Of a stretch of 64,000 bases of DNA, positions 1 through 9,275 are shown piece after piece. Source of the stretch: Macrostomum lignano (Eukaryota). Location: contig NIVC01001262.1 of assembly GCA_002269645.1 (NCBI GenBank), positions 1 to 64,000 of the forward strand, given 5' to 3'. The notes under the pieces are model-generated. The model was given only the letters and a program-made list of their open reading frames with translations, was not told where the DNA came from and searched no databases. Both the position numbers and the translations under genes were made by a program. Position 1 is the first letter of the stretch, and the number at the start of each line of letters is the position of its first letter.

Positions 1-62
1 ATGACTTATAAATATTTTGATAAAACTATAAAATACGACAGAGTCTAAGAAGCTACGGGCTA

Positions 63-347
63 GGCAACTATAAAGCAGATTAGCAACAGCATTTGGTGTG
101 CCAGACCGCCCTTGCCCAGTGCTTCCGTCTGGTGCGGGTCGACACCCACAGAAACACTGGGCTGGCGGCTGCGGTCGGGCCGGGGGAGGGGGAGGCGGCG
201 GCGGACACGAGCTGACGGCGGCGGGAGGCTGGCCGCAGCGGATGCAGCAGCGGCGGCAACTGCGGCGCTTGGTGGCGCGCCGCGGCGCGATACGCATAGG
301 GGTGGGGCGGAGGGGATTAGAATCCCAGCCGCTCCACCCCCGAGTCC
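63..347 (-). other. In-frame stop-free tail (95 codons) downstream of the AMD1 UAG; candidate readthrough extension
   Basis: Next in-frame stop after TAG 350-348 is TAG 62-60. Translation: GLGGGAAGILIPSAPPLCVSRRGAPPSAAVAAAAASAAASLPPPSARVRRRLPLPRPDRSRQPSVSVGVDPHQTEALGKGGLAHQMLLLICFIVA. Confidence 0.5.
298..341 (-). promoter_or_regulatory. GC-rich stem-loop 6-7 nt 3' of the AMD1 stop codon
   Basis: mRNA GGGGUGGAGCGG (340-329) pairs with CCGCCCCACCCC (310-299), 11 of 12 bp. After a 2x2 internal loop, GGGAU/AUCCC closes a UCUA loop. Confidence 0.7.
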
Positions 348-3286
348 CTAAAAGTACGGGCCCTCGCCCTGGCACCAGACGTCGCGAGGATCCGGCTCGC
401 GCGGGTCGCCAGCGCTGGCGTCGGTCTCCAAGACGGCAGCAGCGACGAAGGCGGCGCCATCGTCTGGCGGAGGTCCGGCAAGCCGGCGGCTCTCGAAGCG
501 GGCAAAGGTGGCGGTCTGGTGGCAGAACATGGCGAACTGGAACTCGCAGCGCTCGTAGCCGGCCACGAGGTCGGCGCTGCGCAGCTGGCCGTGCACGTCC
601 GCGTGGCTGCTCTGCAGTGGGGGCACAGGGAGCCTTGGTTGGACTTTAATGGCGTCAGACTAAGTATGACTGTCTTAGTGTCTCAGTTTTTTATGTCTTA
701 GTGTCTCCGTTTTTTGTCTTAGTGGCTCAGTTTTTATGACTTAGTGTCTTAGTGTATCCGTTTTTTTGTCTTAGTGGCTCAGTTTTTATGACTTAGTGTC
801 TCAGTTTTTTGTCTTAGTGGCTCAGTTTTTATGACTTAGTGTCTTAGTGTCTCCGTTTTTTGTCTTAGTGGCTCAGTTTTGTATGACTTAGTGTCTCAGT
901 ATCTCAGTTGTTTTATGTCTTAGTGTCTCAGTTTTTTATGACTTAGTGTCTCAGTTTTTTTATGACTTAGTGTCTCAGTCTTTATGTCTCAGTGTCTCAG
1001 TCTTTATGTCTCAGTGTCTCAGTCTTTATGTCTCAGTGTCTCAGTCTTTATGTCTCAGTATCTCAGTTTTGTATGACTTAGTGTCTCAGTTTTTAATGTC
1101 TTAGTGTCTCAGTTTTTACTGTCTTAGTGTCTTTGTGTGTCAGTTTTTTGTCTTTGTTTCTCAGTTTTTAATGACTGTCTCAGTTTTCAATGTCTGTGTC
1201 TCAGCGTCTGAGTTTTTAATGTGATTGTGTTTGTATCAATGCCTCAGTATCTGTCTAATGTCAGCCTGAATGACTCGGTGTCCATGGTCTTAGACAAAAC
1301 TGTACAGATCCCGTCAGCCCGGCTTCCCCAGGCCGCCATCCTCACCTCGTCGCTAATGACGGTAACGATGAAGCGACTCGGCTGGAAGATGGCCACCACC
1401 TTGCCGACCAGTTCGGCCGCGTTCTCGCAGTGGTCAGTCTCGAAGCTGGCGTAGGAGGCGCACTTCTCCGGGGTCACGTGGACAGTGAAGTAGCGCTTCT
1501 GAAATGCAAAGCATTTGCTTGTAGCTGGCAATGACCATCTCTGGTTGGCGATGACCAATTTGAAGACCAATTATGACCAACCATTGGCAAAACTATTTTG
1601 TGAATCGGGTCTGGTCTGCTGCAATTGTGACAGGGCCCTGTAGTTTCTGTGAACTTTAGCGGCACTGGCTGTGACAACAGCCTCCCATAGTTGCAGGTGC
1701 CCAGGCGCCCATTGTCATGGAAATTTGCACAAGCGGTAAAATTCTCTGACAAGCCAGAATAATCTGTTTTATCTGGCGGAGTATCGAGATTTCAATCCAC
1801 GTCTTCCCGCGGCAGACATTCAGGTTTTATCAAAATTGCTGACGCACTCGGTGAAGCACAGCCGAGTTTCTGCAGCAAATGCCCGCACAGATTACACCGA
1901 ATGACGTCACAGCTTCACGAAACGAGCCGCCTCTTGTTGCAGGCCGAGCAAAGGTCGCAGACGCGGTGACCGCAGTTGCCCGATAATTGGCCTGAATTAC
2001 ACAACTGCGCCAAATTAACCTGGCTGGTTAGCGAAAGGCAAAGTCTAGGGAGGAAGCGAGGGGCGTCGAACTCACGACTGAAAGACCACTCGGAACAATT
2101 TTTGTCCTTGAGCAAGACACTTAACTCTGCATTGCTTCAGCTCACCCAGCTGTAAAAATCGGTACCAGCATTAGCTGGGGTAATTGAGGCTGTGTGTGGC
2201 GACCCCCCTCCCCCAAGTCCCTGGACTGAACAGCCGTACGCCGCCTTCAGACGTGCCGCGTAATAGCTGCGGCTGAGCTGTCGGTTGCACATCTGATCCA
2301 ACTGGGGCAGGTGTAATAAATAAATATAATTATTATATTACTGCCGGCCTGATAGACCGCTGCAGATCCGCACACTAGCAAGAATGAATTTGATGAGCTG
2401 ACGCCAAACCAACCAGTCTATACTATTTCACACTGTACTAATCATGCCAATGTATCGGGTCTTTACTTTTGAGTCATCCATTGTATCGATTGATGAACAA
2501 ATCCCCATTGCGTGAGTCATCACGCGAAATCATACACAGCCATACACACTGCATGCAAAAAACAGATTAAAAAACAACTTGCATTCTCCAGAAATTACTT
2601 ACAGCAGGTGCAAACAATTTGCATTAATTATCAATAACCAATTAATATTTGCGATACAACAGAGACACGGCAGAAGCGCCACTAAGCAACTAACCTGGTC
2701 GATAATGCCATTCACCGAGTAGCCGCAGGGCTCGAACAGGTAGTCATCGATCATCACGCTAGAGTTGGTGAACAAATCCGCGATGCCGGCAGACTGCGGG
2801 AGGGAGAGTATCAGATTTGACAAGTGCAGCAACAGCCTGAGCCAATTCAGAGCTCAGTTAATAAACTGGCGCATGCTCGATGCTCACCTTGGTGACGTCC
2901 GAGGCGGTCCTGTCGCCTTCCTTGAAGAACAGCATCCGCTTGTCATTGTCCAGCGAGTTCATGATCACCTGCAGGCGGGAATGGGGGGAAGGTAAAGGGG
3001 AAGAAAAGCTGATTATTCTGGCGATCGGGAGCTGTCAGAGCAGAGGTACTAAGAGGGCCTCAGGGCTCACCTCAACAGTGCAGTTGGACCGGCGAGGGCT
3101 CCTGTTGCGGGAGAAGCAGAACAGATGGTAGCAGTCCGAGTTAGTGCTGCCCAGCACCCTAGCCAGGCCCTTGTCGAAATAGTTCAGCAGAGTCTCCGTC
3201 TCGCGCTTGAACTTCTGGTGCCTGAACGGCTGCTCGTCCGGATTCAGAAACTTCGGCCTCGAATAGAACACCTCCTGTGTCGGGGG

Positions 3287-3334
<48 letters not shown>

Positions 3335-5605
3335 TGATAGATCTAGGCACATAACAAACAGGTGGAGCAATCAGGCAACTCACAGCCACAGAATCAAACC
3401 CGACGCTCTTTCCCAGTCCAATGAAATCCTCGATAGCATTCAGCAGGTTGGTCTGGCCGCAGGTCTTCACAATCATTCTGTCCTCAAAGATGAACAGGCT
3501 GCTCTCGCTGTGAAAGACAGATTGATGCAGACAATAAATGAATATTCAAGTAAAAAGTTTAAAGTAAATTTAAACCAAAAACCGGACTTACCTGAGCAGG
3601 TAAGCAGTGACTTGATCTGAGCGACATTCATTCAAGATGCTGCAGTTCACCTTGTCCAGAATCTTCTCAACATCATCTCTAAAAAAGAAACCCAGTTGTA
3701 TAATTACATAGGTTGTCTAGAACAATAAAAGAATACATTTCAATAGGATAATATACTTGCAAATTTACTCAAAAATATTTTTTTCTATTGTAATTATTAC
3801 CTTAATCATCTAAATCACAAGTTAAAAACATAAAAATTATAACTATGATTAGCTTTGTTAAATTAAACCAAGTTAATTATATCTTTAAACATCTTTGTTA
3901 TTCCTGAAGGCCTATTAAAATATTTATTGGTTTTTTAACCAATTTTTTAAGATTAATAGAATAATGAAACTACCTATTATATTGGCTCAATTCAATTAAA
4001 ATAAATAAAATACAAAGTTAGCTAATCAATATTATCATTCATGTTTTTTTTCATTTAATGAAATAAAATTAGATTTTTATACAATGTCAATGCTAATAAG
4101 ATGAAAAAAGGAGGAAAAAAGTAATTTAGATATAACCTCATATTTATTGATAAGTTTTATACTTACTATTAAAAAGATAGTTTTTATAAATTTCAAAGAA
4201 AATAATGCTACTGAATAGCATTTTAAATCAAATCATTTAATGATGACAAATATTTACATTATAGACCTAAATATACTTATAATACAATAGCCTTATTATG
4301 AGAAAAAATTATGGTGATGTTTTACTTTTGTGCAGTTAATTATTTTCTTAGAAAGCTACTATTTACTACTTAAATAGACATAAAATTTTATAACTTCATA
4401 TTTTCTCTAATATAGTCTCTGATGATCAATTGAATAGGTAGATTCAATCAATTGTCAATTATTATGGCCAATATAGGGCCAATGCAATAGACTTATAACT
4501 TGAGCAGCTACACAATACAATTATTTTAGCTGGCTGCATACTAGCACTTAAAAGTATAACTCGAGCTATTTATTTTTGCTTTATTAATTTATAGCACTAT
4601 TTACTTAGTTGATAATTTATCATTTATCCATTAAAATGCATCAATCTTTCCATTGAACCCATTTAGTATTCATTGTTAAACTAAACAGAAACTACAAATT
4701 TCTAAGAGAAAATATTACTTACTAAACTTCTAAAGTGAAAAGCTGCTACTAAAATACTTATTGATAGCTATAGGCATAGCTAGCTAAGCCTACAATAAGA
4801 AAAGGCAAAAAATCAATGATAATTTTCATAAGTGAAGACAAAAATATTTTATTTGCATACATGCTTGGGCGCAACCTAGGGATTCACCCAGCCGTTTCTA
4901 TTGGCAACACACACATGTAAGTTGCTATTGGACAGAATAGTAGTCACGTGACTGCTCTCAGCCAATAGCGACTTACATGCGTGTGTTGCCAATAGAAACG
5001 GCCGGGTGAATCCCTAGGTTGCACATGTATGTTTGCATAGAAGTTTAAATTTTTTTTAGTAATTTAATAAGTCTCTTAACTGATAAAATTAGGCCCCTGG
5101 TAGAAATTGCAACACAGTTTTTAATTAGAATAAAAGATATGAGAACTAGAAACTGATTGCTTGAAATCCTAATTATAATAACACCAACTAAACTTACTCC
5201 TTAAAATCTGTTTTATACCATTTTTTTGCTTTATATAGCATCTAATCATTTTGAGCTAATAAAATTAAAGAACTATGATATGAAACTTTTGTAATTTTGA
5301 ATTCCTTTTAGGGCTAGTCTACCGTTTTTCATTTACTTGTTTGTGTGCAATTAATCATGGTATGAAAATTACCTGCGAAGGCGCAGTAAGTTTATCTCTG
5401 GCTCAGAGTCATTCTCGACAAGCTTCATTCTATTCGCTGCATAGCTTCCATTCCGAAATTTAGCAATGTGCCGACGAGGCCTTTGGAAGGAAATCTCCAA
5501 CAGCTTTTCAGCTCCCTCAAAAGGCTTATCGACAATTGGATCTACAATTGATCCCATCTCCGAAGACGAAGGGGAGCTTGCGAAATCTTCTTGAAAACGT
5601 ACCAT
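348..5605 (-). CDS. AMD1: S-adenosylmethionine decarboxylase proenzyme (about 414 aa from AUG 5605; 398 aa from AUG 5557)
   Basis: Exons (minus): 5605-5373, 3678-3592, 3507-3384, 3274-3071, 2968-2888, 2793-2695, 1498-1346, 611-348. All GT-AG and phase-consistent (1245 nt). Eukaryotic AdoMetDC motifs present: FEGAEKLLEI, AYLLS-ESSLF (E/S autocleavage and pyruvoyl Ser), KTCG, YSRPKF, FEPCGYSVNG, TVHVTPE, SYASFET. Confidence 0.96.
665..1215. repeat. Degenerate ~20-22 bp minisatellite in the last AMD1 intron
   Basis: Repeated cttagtgtctcagtttttatg variants. Confidence 0.9.
2084..2340 (+). mobile_element. SINE-like dispersed repeat, copy 1 (AMD1 intron)
   Basis: About 240 nt closely similar to 51810-52030 (tgtccttgagcaag..ttaactctgcattgcttcagc..attagctggggtaattgagg..gctgcggctgagctgtcggttgcacatctg), with an AT-rich tail. 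Confidence 0.7.
3287..3342. repeat. (GATA)n microsatellite
   Basis: Direct reading; lies next to an AMD1 acceptor. Confidence 0.95.
4871..5022. mobile_element. Palindromic MITE-like element in the AMD1 first coding intron
   Basis: 61-bp arms 4871-4931 and 4962-5022 with only 3 transition mismatches. The 30-nt spacer is itself partly palindromic around CACGTG. Confidence 0.7.
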
Positions 5606-7124: not shown

Positions 7125-9112
7125 ATGCCTTCAAGATTTAGGGGCTTCTCGGTGCTGACAGTCTGCTACACGCTGCTGCTGGTTGCGCTCTGCTCTCAGC
7201 CGCAGCTCACAGCCGCAGGAGTCAACAGCTCCGTGAGCTCGATTTCAATCAGCCAGGAAATATCGATTGTGTCAGCCTCGGTGAACAGCTCGGTGCACAG
7301 AGAGGCTCTGAGAGTCCTGGAGATTGACGGCTGCCAGGCGGCGGTGCACAAGACCCAGCTGAGCAAGGCCAGCTTCCTGCTGGAGCCGCTGCTGTGCTGG
7401 CGGCCGGGCATGGAGCAGCTGCTCTGTCCGGGCTTCGACTACGCCAGGTCGCGCCACTTCCTGCGCATTCCCGTCCTGCTGGCCGACCCGGCGTTCGCTG
7501 ACAAGGCCAAGCGGCGGCTGCACGATCTGTTCCCGACATCCGTCAACTTCATGAACATTGGCGCGATCCAATTCCAGCTGTCAACTGACAGCGCTGCAGT
7601 GGAAGCCGAACTGGAGAAGAGGCTCGGCGTTGCTGGCGGCCGCACCTACCTGCTGCTGAGGTCCTACTGCACTTCGGAGAGCCACTGCCGCGACATGAGG
7701 TTGGTCTTCCCGGGGATAAAAAACTGCTTTCTGAAAACTGAAATGCGACAGAATTAAAATTCCGGAGAGGCGTTAAAATAAACCAGTTGAATCAGAGGTT
7801 CGCATACCAAAGGGACACAATGTACAATAGAATGTCCATGACGTCAGTGCACTGTGCAATGGGTTATTGCCAAACTCATTGCTTGGAATGTCTGCCGCTT
7901 AAAAACAGCTGCATGCTTCGATCACTTCCAGCCAAGGCATCGCCAAGCAGCCCAGCATTTATTTCGAAAGGCTGAGGCTGTCGCTGAGCTCACAGGAGTA
8001 CTCAATGCTCAGCAATTCTGTCCGTCTGGTCGCGGCCGGCCCGTTCGCCTGCCAGAATGAGCTGCTGCGGCCGTTGCAGGGCGGCCAGCTGCTGGGGTCC
8101 GGTGTGGCGGCGCCCGAACCGGCAGCGGAAAACCACACCAAGGTGGTGGAGGTGGACGGCCAGTTGTACTTCCTGGTCCAGCAGCGGTCCAGCGGGAGAG
8201 TGAGCTTCCAGCGGCCCTTCGCCGACTATGAAACCGGCTTTGGGGATCCCCGCGACGACTATTGGATGGGTGAGTTGAGGCTCAGTCAGTCGGGATTCAG
8301 GGTCTTGGTTAAGCCTCAGTCAGTTGGGATTCAGGGTCTTGGGTGAGCCTCAGTCAGTTGGGATTCAGGGTCTGGGGTGAGCCTCAGTCAGTCGGGATTC
8401 AGGGTCTGGGGTGAGCCTCAGTCAGTTGGGATTCAGGGTCTTGGGTGAGCCTCAGTCAGTTGGGATTCAGGGTCTGGGGTGAGCCTCAGTCAGTCGGGAT
8501 TCAGGGTCTTGGGTGAGCCTCAGTCAGTCGGGATTCAGTGTCTTGGGTGAGCCTCAGGCAGTCGGGATTCAGGGTCTTGGGTGAGCCTCAGGCAGTCGGG
8601 ATTCAGGGTCTTGGGTGAGCCTCAGTCAGTCGGGATTCAGACCTCCAAATCGATGGCTGTCCCCAGGCCTCAAGCTGCTGCACTTGCTGACGAAGACCAA
8701 CCGCATCCTCCGGGTGGAGCTGATCCGGCACCGGAGCTCCACCTTCGACCAGGACCTGTTCCACGCTGAGTACACCAACTTCAAGGTCGGGTCGGCGCCC
8801 GCTTACTCGATGACCTACTCGGCCTTCAACAAGGCCAAGTCCTCGGTGGAGCGAGACGCTCTGGCCGAGAGCCGCGGCCGGGCCTTCTCCACGATGGACC
8901 GCGACAATGACCGCTGGGACCACTCCTGCTCCCTGATCAGGGGTGGCTCAGGCGGCTGGTGGTTCAATCGCTGCGGCAAGTGCAACCCAAACGGCCTCTT
9001 CTTCGAAACCAACGTGCGCAACGAGTCTGGCATCCGGTGGGAGTACCTGGACTCCAGGTCGCTCAGCGGCAACGTCACGCTAAAGTACATCCGAATGCTG
9101 CTCAAAGTTTGA
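7125..9112 (+). CDS. Secreted fibrinogen-related domain (FReD) protein, about 425 aa
   Basis: Exons 7125-7699, 8013-8269 (acceptor weak), 8667-9112; phases consistent (1278 nt). Signal peptide at the N-terminus. FReD motifs: VQQRSSGRVSFQRPFADYETGFGDPRDDYWMGL, FSTMDRDND, GGWWFNRC..CNPNG, IRW. Confidence 0.88.
8270..8640. repeat. 34-bp minisatellite, FReD intron 2
   Basis: Unit GTGAGCCTCAGTCAGTTGGGATTCAGGGTCTTGG, about 10 copies. Confidence 0.95.
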
Positions 9113-9275
9113 TTAACTGCCTTTTGTGAAGCAAGAAATTATTATAAATAAACAGATTTTGTCACCTCTTTGGCCGTTCGAGGACGGTGAATCAAGTTCA
9201 CATTGCTTATCATTGATTGACTAACCTCTTTAGTTTGAGGGATGGGAAAATTTGTCAGCGGCAGCGCCAGCGTCA

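Follow-up and report, generated by a model that had tools for sequence, protein, structure and literature searches.

The gene for S-adenosylmethionine decarboxylase (AMD1, or SAMDC) of the flatworm Macrostomum lignano lies on the minus strand of contig NIVC01001262.1 (assembly GCA_002269645.1), of which we analyzed positions 1 to 64,000; this whole stretch is called the window, and all coordinates of M. lignano features refer to it. The stop codon of this gene, UAG, is followed after a spacer of six nucleotides (nt) by a compact hairpin of 17 base pairs (bp), here called HP1, whose stability is rare in the window. We read the segment 350-298, with moderate confidence, as a structure-assisted stop-codon readthrough signal on the AMD1 mRNA. 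The candidate signal and the tail that it would open are best read as an invertebrate counterpart of the C-terminal tail of vertebrate AMD1, and not as a member of that family by sequence. Comparison with AMD1 mRNAs of several other invertebrates shows the same layout, joined to an in-frame open reading frame (ORF) that appears to be under selection.

The AMD1 gene model contains eight exons with AG/GT borders (exons 1-8: 5605-5373, 3678-3592, 3507-3384, 3274-3071, 2968-2888, 2793-2695, 1498-1346 and 611-348, minus strand). The product of 414 residues is 100% identical to the M. lignano protein PAA47949.1 and carries the Pfam domain SAM_decarbox (PF01536) over residues 28-367 (E 1e-93). No AMD1 from another Macrostomum was found in the protein database, in which the next-best match to the M. 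lignano protein is 38% identical. The last coding exon of this model, including the stop (348..611, minus strand), encodes the end of SAM_decarbox and a C-terminal extension; this extension, GC-rich and located beyond the domain, makes up the final 47 residues and ends in ...GEGPYF. The stop codon UAG (348..350, minus strand) is the same in the three other genomic copies of the gene (L001, L002 and L003, described below), and between it and the hairpin lies the spacer GGACUC (342..347, minus strand), which would be decoded as Gly-Leu in case of readthrough. Thus, the stop context is UAG GGA CUC, with G in the +4 position. The GC content is 0.72-0.78 across positions 101-350 and drops to 0.34 at positions 1-100.

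HP1 (298..341, minus strand) spans 44 nt and starts 6 nt past the stop; its 17 bp are arranged as 8 bp, a 1x1 internal loop, 4 bp, a 2x2 internal loop and 5 bp that close a UCUA loop. The calculated folding energy of the hairpin is -31.4 kcal/mol, and that of its 72-nt window is -34.6 kcal/mol (z -2.76), a stability that none of 200 shuffles reaches; it should be noted that the shuffles of this 72-nt window average -25 kcal/mol already. As a measure of rarity, each 50-nt window of the 64 kb was folded on both strands (128 kb). Seven strand-specific sites equal HP1 in stability among the 63,950 windows, and when the comparison is restricted to windows with a GC content of at least 0.68, 15 of 5,886 (0.25%) fold as well. 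A stop-proximal hairpin was not detected at two neighbouring M. lignano genes (z -0.8 to +1.0). Both HP1 and a second hairpin, HP2, which is described below, are present in a single copy within the window, and a repeat or transposon origin of the two was ruled out on this ground; neither of them, nor anything else in the window, matched an Rfam family. The initial annotation of this region had described the AMD1 stop as UAG followed by GGA CUC, a GC-rich stem-loop of ~17 bp at 341-298, and GC-rich sequence that continues to about position 95. The stop is found as described at 350-348, folding confirms the stem-loop with a spacer of 6 nt, and the high GC content extends to ~100 before the fall.

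Metagenome contigs were scanned with an alignment of AMD1, which produced 80 AMD1 loci, most of them intronless, and three Logan contigs were added. The comparators thus include metagenome and SRA contigs, which are labelled by their best named relatives, and members of the same clade are not independent. A common layout is found at the AMD1 stops of bdelloid rotifers and of two invertebrate clades, consisting of UAG or UGA, a G, a spacer of 4-10 nt, and a hairpin of 11-26 bp. All 10 relatives with a hairpin use UAG or UGA as the stop, and the M. lignano type of start, in which the stop is followed by GGA and a codon for a hydrophobic residue, is also present in rotifer and other invertebrate AMD1 mRNAs. 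In the bdelloid Didymodactylos carnosus, UAG GGA UUA is followed, after a 6-nt spacer, by a 23-bp hairpin (-26 kcal/mol, z -4.24 and -5.9), and the in-frame extension has 72 codons at 27% GC (p 0.003). The Adineta/Rotaria-like loci L027 and L088 have UGA GGU/GGA UUA with hairpins of 24-26 bp (z -5.2 and -3.2), and the tail of L088 is at least 80 codons long (p 0.017). Animal clade A (L007, L009 and L087), the nearest named relatives of which are mites, ticks and rotifers at ~50%, combines UAG GGA/GAA and a hairpin of 11-19 bp with tails of 90, 97 and 81 codons (p 0.0002, <0.0002 and 0.004, respectively). The lophotrochozoan-like clade C (L008, L013 and L089) has UGA G.. and hairpins of 11-21 bp, with a tail of 70 codons in L089 (p 0.004). 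In the AT-rich relatives, frame 0 alone is open for 70-97 codons (p 0.0002-0.004), and the other frames close within 0-35 codons.

The evolution of these tails and stems points in the same direction. Clade A tails vary in the middle of their length with in-frame indels, and all of them end with S[HN][KR]..KRLR[YF][LF]..N...KPR-stop; this end is maintained through synonymous codon swaps (AGA/CGT/CGA and CGG/AGA), a protein-level signature, and therefore the clade A tail is apparently translated. L008 and L013 share the hairpin and, in frame despite many indels, a GVHRTDL block, although about half of the synonymous sites of the coding sequence (CDS) are substituted. The stems of different clades are unrelated in sequence and occupy the same position after the AMD1 stop; within clades, two compensatory pairs were found in bdelloids and two in clade A, with 0-1 broken pairs. 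A covariance model spanning the clades was considered and abandoned, since the stems have so little sequence in common that an E-value in 128 kb would not be meaningful.

The distribution of these features among the metagenome loci, taken as an unbiased sample, is uneven. Hairpins with z of -3 or below occur at 4 of 13 animal-like loci, whereas the 42 AMD1 loci of fungi, plants or protists have none (Fisher test, p 0.002), and significantly open tails show the same proportions, 4 of 13 versus 0 of 42 (Mann-Whitney test on the p values for openness, 7e-5). The +4 G is found at 8 of 13 animal-like loci versus 10 of 58 others, and UAA is the majority stop outside animals, whereas it is rare among animals. 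In amphioxus, the AMD1 stop UGA C is followed by 66 open codons (p 0.016), and a hairpin is absent; nothing notable was detected at the AMD1 stop region of Echinococcus, and nematode-like and cestode AMD1 sequences have no tail. Several further observations were made on these loci. In the hexapod-like L017 (stop at 1229), which shares 70% identity with cockroach and mayfly, UGA GGA CUU is continued by 309 in-frame sense codons with a GC content of 40%, and the stop lacks a nearby hairpin; the chelicerate-like L010/L011 (stop at 4027) has UGA CUAG and an in-frame extension of 29 codons. The L089 tail ends with RRKLWFLRALVSIRPT-stop, and the basic residue at -3 together with Pro at -2 in the tail ends of clade A and L089 recalls termination-arrest peptides. 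As to the main ORF, the AMD1 proteins of arthropods, bdelloids and amphioxus terminate, with few exceptions, in ...PS-stop (KAPS, KFPS, KHPS, AKPS), from which ...GPYF of M. lignano differs; the final two codons, conserved across phyla, are possibly a part of the recoding context. The AMD1 model P0196 of Adineta ricciae (403 aa) contains a frame shift near the C-terminus and runs over the stop region into 3' sequence; thus, automatic annotation was confused at this rotifer AMD1 stop.

For M. lignano, we infer readthrough, stimulation by HP1 and a role of the tail, in the following way. A ribosome with UAG in its A site would have the base of HP1, 6 nt downstream, at the entrance of the mRNA channel, where known stimulators act. 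HP1 would shift the competition from eRF1 to a near-cognate tRNA, as in murine leukemia virus (MuLV), and a minority of ribosomes would go on through the GC-rich 3' region for ~88-95 codons. The extension would throttle the output of the enzyme by stalling or by destabilisation of the product; by analogy with vertebrate AMD1, its effect is probably a limit on enzyme output rather than the addition of a functional domain. The poly(A) signals AATAAA and ATTAAA are absent before +1985, and the 3'UTR (untranslated region) is conserved to +755; therefore, transcripts should include the tail region. AMD1 controls the supply of decarboxylated S-adenosylmethionine for spermidine and spermine synthesis and is, to our knowledge, among the most elaborately translationally regulated genes. 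M. lignano is transgenic-capable, and the readthrough prediction is therefore directly testable.

A number of observations in M. lignano itself weigh against this reading, and many of them concern the tail. The in-frame extension in the window version (63..347, minus strand) has 95 sense codons, ends with ...MLLLICFIVA and is closed by TAG (60..62, minus strand), which is CAG in the paralog L003. This open frame is not significant (p 0.13-0.18): when 347-63 was dinucleotide-shuffled 5,000 times, frame 0 came out fully open in 918 cases, and 47% of these shuffles hold at least one open frame; p was 0.13 when the test was repeated. A second frame of the minus strand is also stop-free across the tail region. 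ORF length was consequently rejected as evidence, since 13-18% of shuffles are equally open and a second open frame exists; the openness of the tail carries no weight, because a GC content of 69-75% produces it by chance. Neither codon usage nor periodicity of GC content at third codon positions (GC3) revealed a coding signature in any frame of either sequence version of the tail. The codon log-likelihood is between -0.09 and -0.48 in all frames of the tail, whereas the eight exons score between +0.37 and +1.22; the excess in GC3 gives p 0.06, and the third codon position is not the GC-highest one in frame 0. The tail frame of the window is thus statistically indistinguishable from non-coding GC-rich sequence.

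Comparison with the other copies of the gene adds to these difficulties. The protein cluster has three genomic members in the assembly, which we compared to the window as L001, L002 and L003. The window differs from L001 and L002 by 7 and 12 substitutions in 7.7-9 kb, and L003, a diverged paralog, shows differences of 1.5% in the CDS and ~12% in introns. In the tail, L001-L003 are set apart from the window by clustered changes at 282-263, an additional nucleotide at 281 and a loss of two at 223-222; L001 additionally has one G fewer in the run at 341. These +1/-2 indels alter two thirds of the tail peptide, and none of L001, L002 and L003 has the MLLLICFIVA end in frame. Readthrough translation would give 88 codons ending with ...RTRRKHWARAVWHTKCCC in L002 and L003, closed in their frame by TAA (80..82, minus strand), and would be cut off after 9 codons in L001. 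Both the version of the window, with 95 codons, and the one with 88 codons keep the frame open. Compared to L001 and L002, the window lacks 1-3 bases at 3747, 2088, 1639, 620 and 281, none of them in the CDS, suggesting that the sequence of the window carries small deletion errors or represents a derived allele. At the alignable indel sites (3747, 1639 and 620), L003 sides with L001 and L002 against the window, and therefore the window's own version of the tail is probably derived or a consensus error. Taken together, the tail peptide of M. lignano looks weakly constrained or unconstrained.

Conservation between the paralogs does not help the tail either. The tails of L002 and L003 differ by three substitutions, two synonymous and one nonsynonymous in the L002 frame, too few for a test. 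The 3'UTR is 97-100% identical between the paralogs for ~750 nt past the stop, into AT-rich sequence (L002 11308-12060 versus L003), so that conservation is not specific for the tail but runs to about +755; with identity through the whole 3'UTR, the low divergence of the tail says nothing about coding. As an observation in its own right, the near-identity of the 3'UTR versus ~12% divergence of introns implies either strong constraint on the whole 3'UTR or gene conversion over the last exon and the UTR.

Other unfavourable points concern HP1 and the stop itself. HP1 is retained in L001-L003, with the stem region 1 nt shorter in L001 and one C to A change in L003; this change is uncompensated and costs 3.7 kcal/mol. 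The 72-nt windows of L002 and L003 reach z scores of -1.8 and -1.0 only, and HP1 has no covariation support inside M. lignano, where the copies are too similar. The tail ends with ...LLLICFIVA in the window or ...WARAVWHTKCCC in L002 and L003 (HTKCCC end); it does not contain the vertebrate arrest motif, which is given below, and resembles the tail ends of other invertebrates as little. In human cells, G is the least readthrough-prone nucleotide in the +4 position (PMC7089771); therefore, structure rather than context would have to act as the stimulator in M. lignano.

Claims of the initial annotation on the tail had different fates. The frame is indeed open for 95 codons to the TAG at 62-60 in the window and ends with MLLLICFIVA, and the accompanying caveats, that one other minus-strand frame is stop-free and ORF length is weak evidence, agree with the shuffles; the hairpin, named there as the stronger clue, goes beyond chance and the ORF does not. 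The proposal of a defined 95-codon peptide with a hydrophobic end was not upheld, considering the frame-shifting indels in three copies, the chance openness and the missing codon signature. As to a deeply shared, structure-stimulated readthrough, comparative support comes from the layout, which recurs with significantly open frames in other invertebrates, and the part that falls is the M. lignano peptide of 95 codons.

The 3' region contains two further structures. HP2 (105..169, minus strand; 26 bp, -45.9 kcal/mol, z -7.2), which the initial annotation overlooked, lies inside the putative tail and 24 nt upstream of the tail stop in the frame of L002 and L003; it is the strongest minus-strand hairpin of the 64-kb window and is identical in all four copies. 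So stable a hairpin is unusual within a translated region, which is one more point against readthrough through this segment. The shape of HP2 fits a microRNA precursor with respect to its 26 bp, the loop is only 6 nt, and no Rfam family scored above chance; candidate roles are a ribosome roadblock, a small-RNA precursor or a protein-binding site. Between HP1 and HP2 there is a small stem of 7 bp with an 8-nt loop (262..283, minus strand; 283-277 paired with 268-262), which is paired perfectly in both sequence versions despite three base-pair flips between the window and L001-L003 (GCGGCGC/GCGCCGC versus GGGCGGC/GCCGCCC) and a 1-nt indel in the loop. These flips may be real covariation or a symmetric consensus artefact; the latter is possible because a strand- and sequence-specific error strikes both arms of a palindrome alike.

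These structures can also be interpreted without translation. It is possible, if on the whole rather unlikely, that the GC-rich block 347-95 is an untranslated structured element of the 3'UTR, in which HP1, the small stem and HP2 would serve stability, localisation, protein binding or small-RNA production; the nearness of HP1 to the stop would be incidental, or would slow termination or recycling, and the open frame would be a by-product of composition. For M. lignano alone such an element fits rather well, since none of 100 shuffles folds as well as the 321-nt segment in its entirety (z -4.23), two of the strongest hairpins of the window lie in the block, with HP2 as an outlier, and the small stem pairs in both versions. 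The missing coding signature in every frame, the tolerance of frame-shifting differences between copies and the conservation of the 3'UTR well beyond the tail likewise agree with it. Conversely, it matches no Rfam family, and it leaves unexplained why rotifers and two other clades have the same layout together with an ORF that defies their base composition, and why hairpins unrelated in sequence always start 4-10 nt past the AMD1 stop. The latter results also make improbable a coincidence, i.e., a palindrome that happens to lie beside the stop in a GC-rich, low-complexity 3' region where nothing is selected in M. lignano: independent lineages have the identical layout, just 0.25% of the 50-nt windows with matching GC content reach the stability of HP1, and the block is ~1% diverged between paralogs compared to ~12% in introns. 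In favour of such a coincidence are the good folding of GC-rich sequence in general, seen in the high stability of the 72-nt shuffles, the modest z scores of the L002 and L003 versions, the non-significant ORF, and the choice of the feature after the fact by the initial annotation.

Alternative splicing would be another route into the same frame, as the sequence CCGTACTTTTAG followed by GGA resembles a 3' acceptor. At 360-347 (minus strand), a pyrimidine-rich tract precedes TAG/G (TTTTAG/G), and exons 1-7 have a total length of 981 nt, i.e., phase 0, so that joining exon 7 to position 347 would produce a truncated enzyme with the tail in the readthrough frame. We consider this very unlikely: the product would lose the last strands of the SAM_decarbox domain, and relatives with UGA-GGA have the same layout on intronless transcripts; as the stop of these relatives is UGA, they have no AG acceptor at the stop. 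Structure-assisted readthrough continues to be the reading that we favour for the segment 350-298.

Four repeats in the window were recorded in addition to the AMD1 3' region. Most of AMD1 intron 7 is occupied by ~500 nt of tandem 22-nt units (TGTCTTAGTGTCTCAGTTTTTA; 671-1176), and intron 1 contains an inverted repeat (4871-5022) with arms of 61 nt that are 95% complementary and 30 nt apart, like a miniature transposon or a long hairpin. An (AGAT)14 microsatellite is located at 3287-3342 in an AMD1 intron. The stretch 8276-8640 consists of 10.7 copies of a 34-nt unit (95% matches) and lies inside the neighbouring gene with a fibrinogen C domain (~7130-9120, plus strand, by correspondence with L002).

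The recurrence of the layout allows a broader and more tentative proposal, which we regard as doubtful, that readthrough of the AMD1 stop is an ancient bilaterian trait and not a vertebrate invention, with one regulatory principle, a 3' trap entered by a fraction of ribosomes, realised by different hardware from lineage to lineage. Flatworms, rotifers and other spiralian-like animals would have a hairpin close to the stop after UAG/UGA-G, the chelicerate-like sequences UGA-CUAG and amphioxus UGA-C, in combination with lineage-specific tail ends such as KRLRYL...KPR-stop. Under the same proposal, HP2, located 24 nt before the tail stop, might replace the arrest peptide as a roadblock in M. lignano. 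If true, the readthrough-and-stall device of AMD1 would be far older than the vertebrates, to which descriptions in the literature searched are confined, and the invertebrate variants would separate the amount of readthrough from the function of the tail. The invertebrate signals would then also provide a clear cellular, non-viral case of hairpin-stimulated readthrough, with a compact and easily mutated stimulator. In genome annotation, an AMD1 stop should be marked as a recoding candidate when a G, a short spacer and a hairpin come after it.

Among known systems, the closest is the C-terminal tail of vertebrate AMD1. The vertebrate stop is read through into a conserved tail of 127 codons, at the end of which ribosomes stall (Maldosevic et al. 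2026, PMC13025110), and the level of the extended protein stays low (PMC13025110, PMC8831848). The tail end acts with a K117/R121/F124 clamp and an R125 hook, in the motif K-x3-R-x2-F-R-x2-stop (PMC13025110); whether the device works by a ribosome queue, a degron or no-go decay continues to be a matter of debate (PMC8831848, PMC7089771). The M. lignano case shares with it the gene, the start at the stop of the main ORF and an extension of ~100 codons, and clade A further shares a conserved end of the last ~16 residues with a basic residue at -3 (KPR-stop, or RPT-stop in L089). The differences are the length of the vertebrate tail, 127 codons, and the arrest motif, which is absent from the tails of M. 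lignano and other invertebrates. A PDB sequence search with the clade A tail found nothing related, including the vertebrate nascent chain, and the literature searched describes conservation of AMD1 readthrough for vertebrates only, with no mention of invertebrates, SamDC readthrough or a stop-proximal hairpin.

The second group of comparators comprises structure-stimulated signals (MuLV, alphavirus, tobravirus, furovirus, and Drosophila headcase and kelch). The MuLV signal begins with UAG-G-G-A. Spacers of 3' readthrough stimulators are usually 7-12 nt, with 8 nt for the MuLV pseudoknot and Drosophila kelch (PMC3159437), and the stems of alphaviruses and plant viruses start 7-12 nt past the stop (Firth et al. 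2011, PMC3159437). Likenesses are UAG or UGA, a short spacer, a stem of at least 10 bp, and the support of the stem by compensatory changes, here in invertebrate relatives. In contrast to these signals, the spacer is 6 nt in M. lignano (4-10 nt in relatives) instead of the usual 7-12 nt, and the structure is a compact hairpin with a 4-nt loop, neither a pseudoknot nor a stem that closes a loop of 50-270 nt; furthermore, the M. lignano case is a candidate predicted from sequence, in a cellular housekeeping gene of a flatworm.

Two other systems are based on events at a stop codon. The UGA-CUAG readthrough motif is described for the mammalian genes OPRL1, AQP4, LDHB and MDH1 (Loughran et al. 2014, as cited in PMC8831848 and bioRxiv 10.64898/2026.07.14.738498). 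Here also a cellular signal is set by the nucleotides right after the stop, and the chelicerate-like L010/L011 carries this very motif, whereas M. lignano AMD1 has UAG GGAC instead. The MAGDIS upstream open reading frame of vertebrate AMD1 encodes a polyamine-sensing arrest peptide in the 5' leader. It resembles the M. lignano candidate in that translation of the same mRNA is controlled by the behaviour of ribosomes at a stop codon, and differs in its location in the 5' leader and in the use of a nascent peptide rather than an RNA structure; the parallel suggests that polyamine feedback is the likely purpose of the putative signal in M. lignano.

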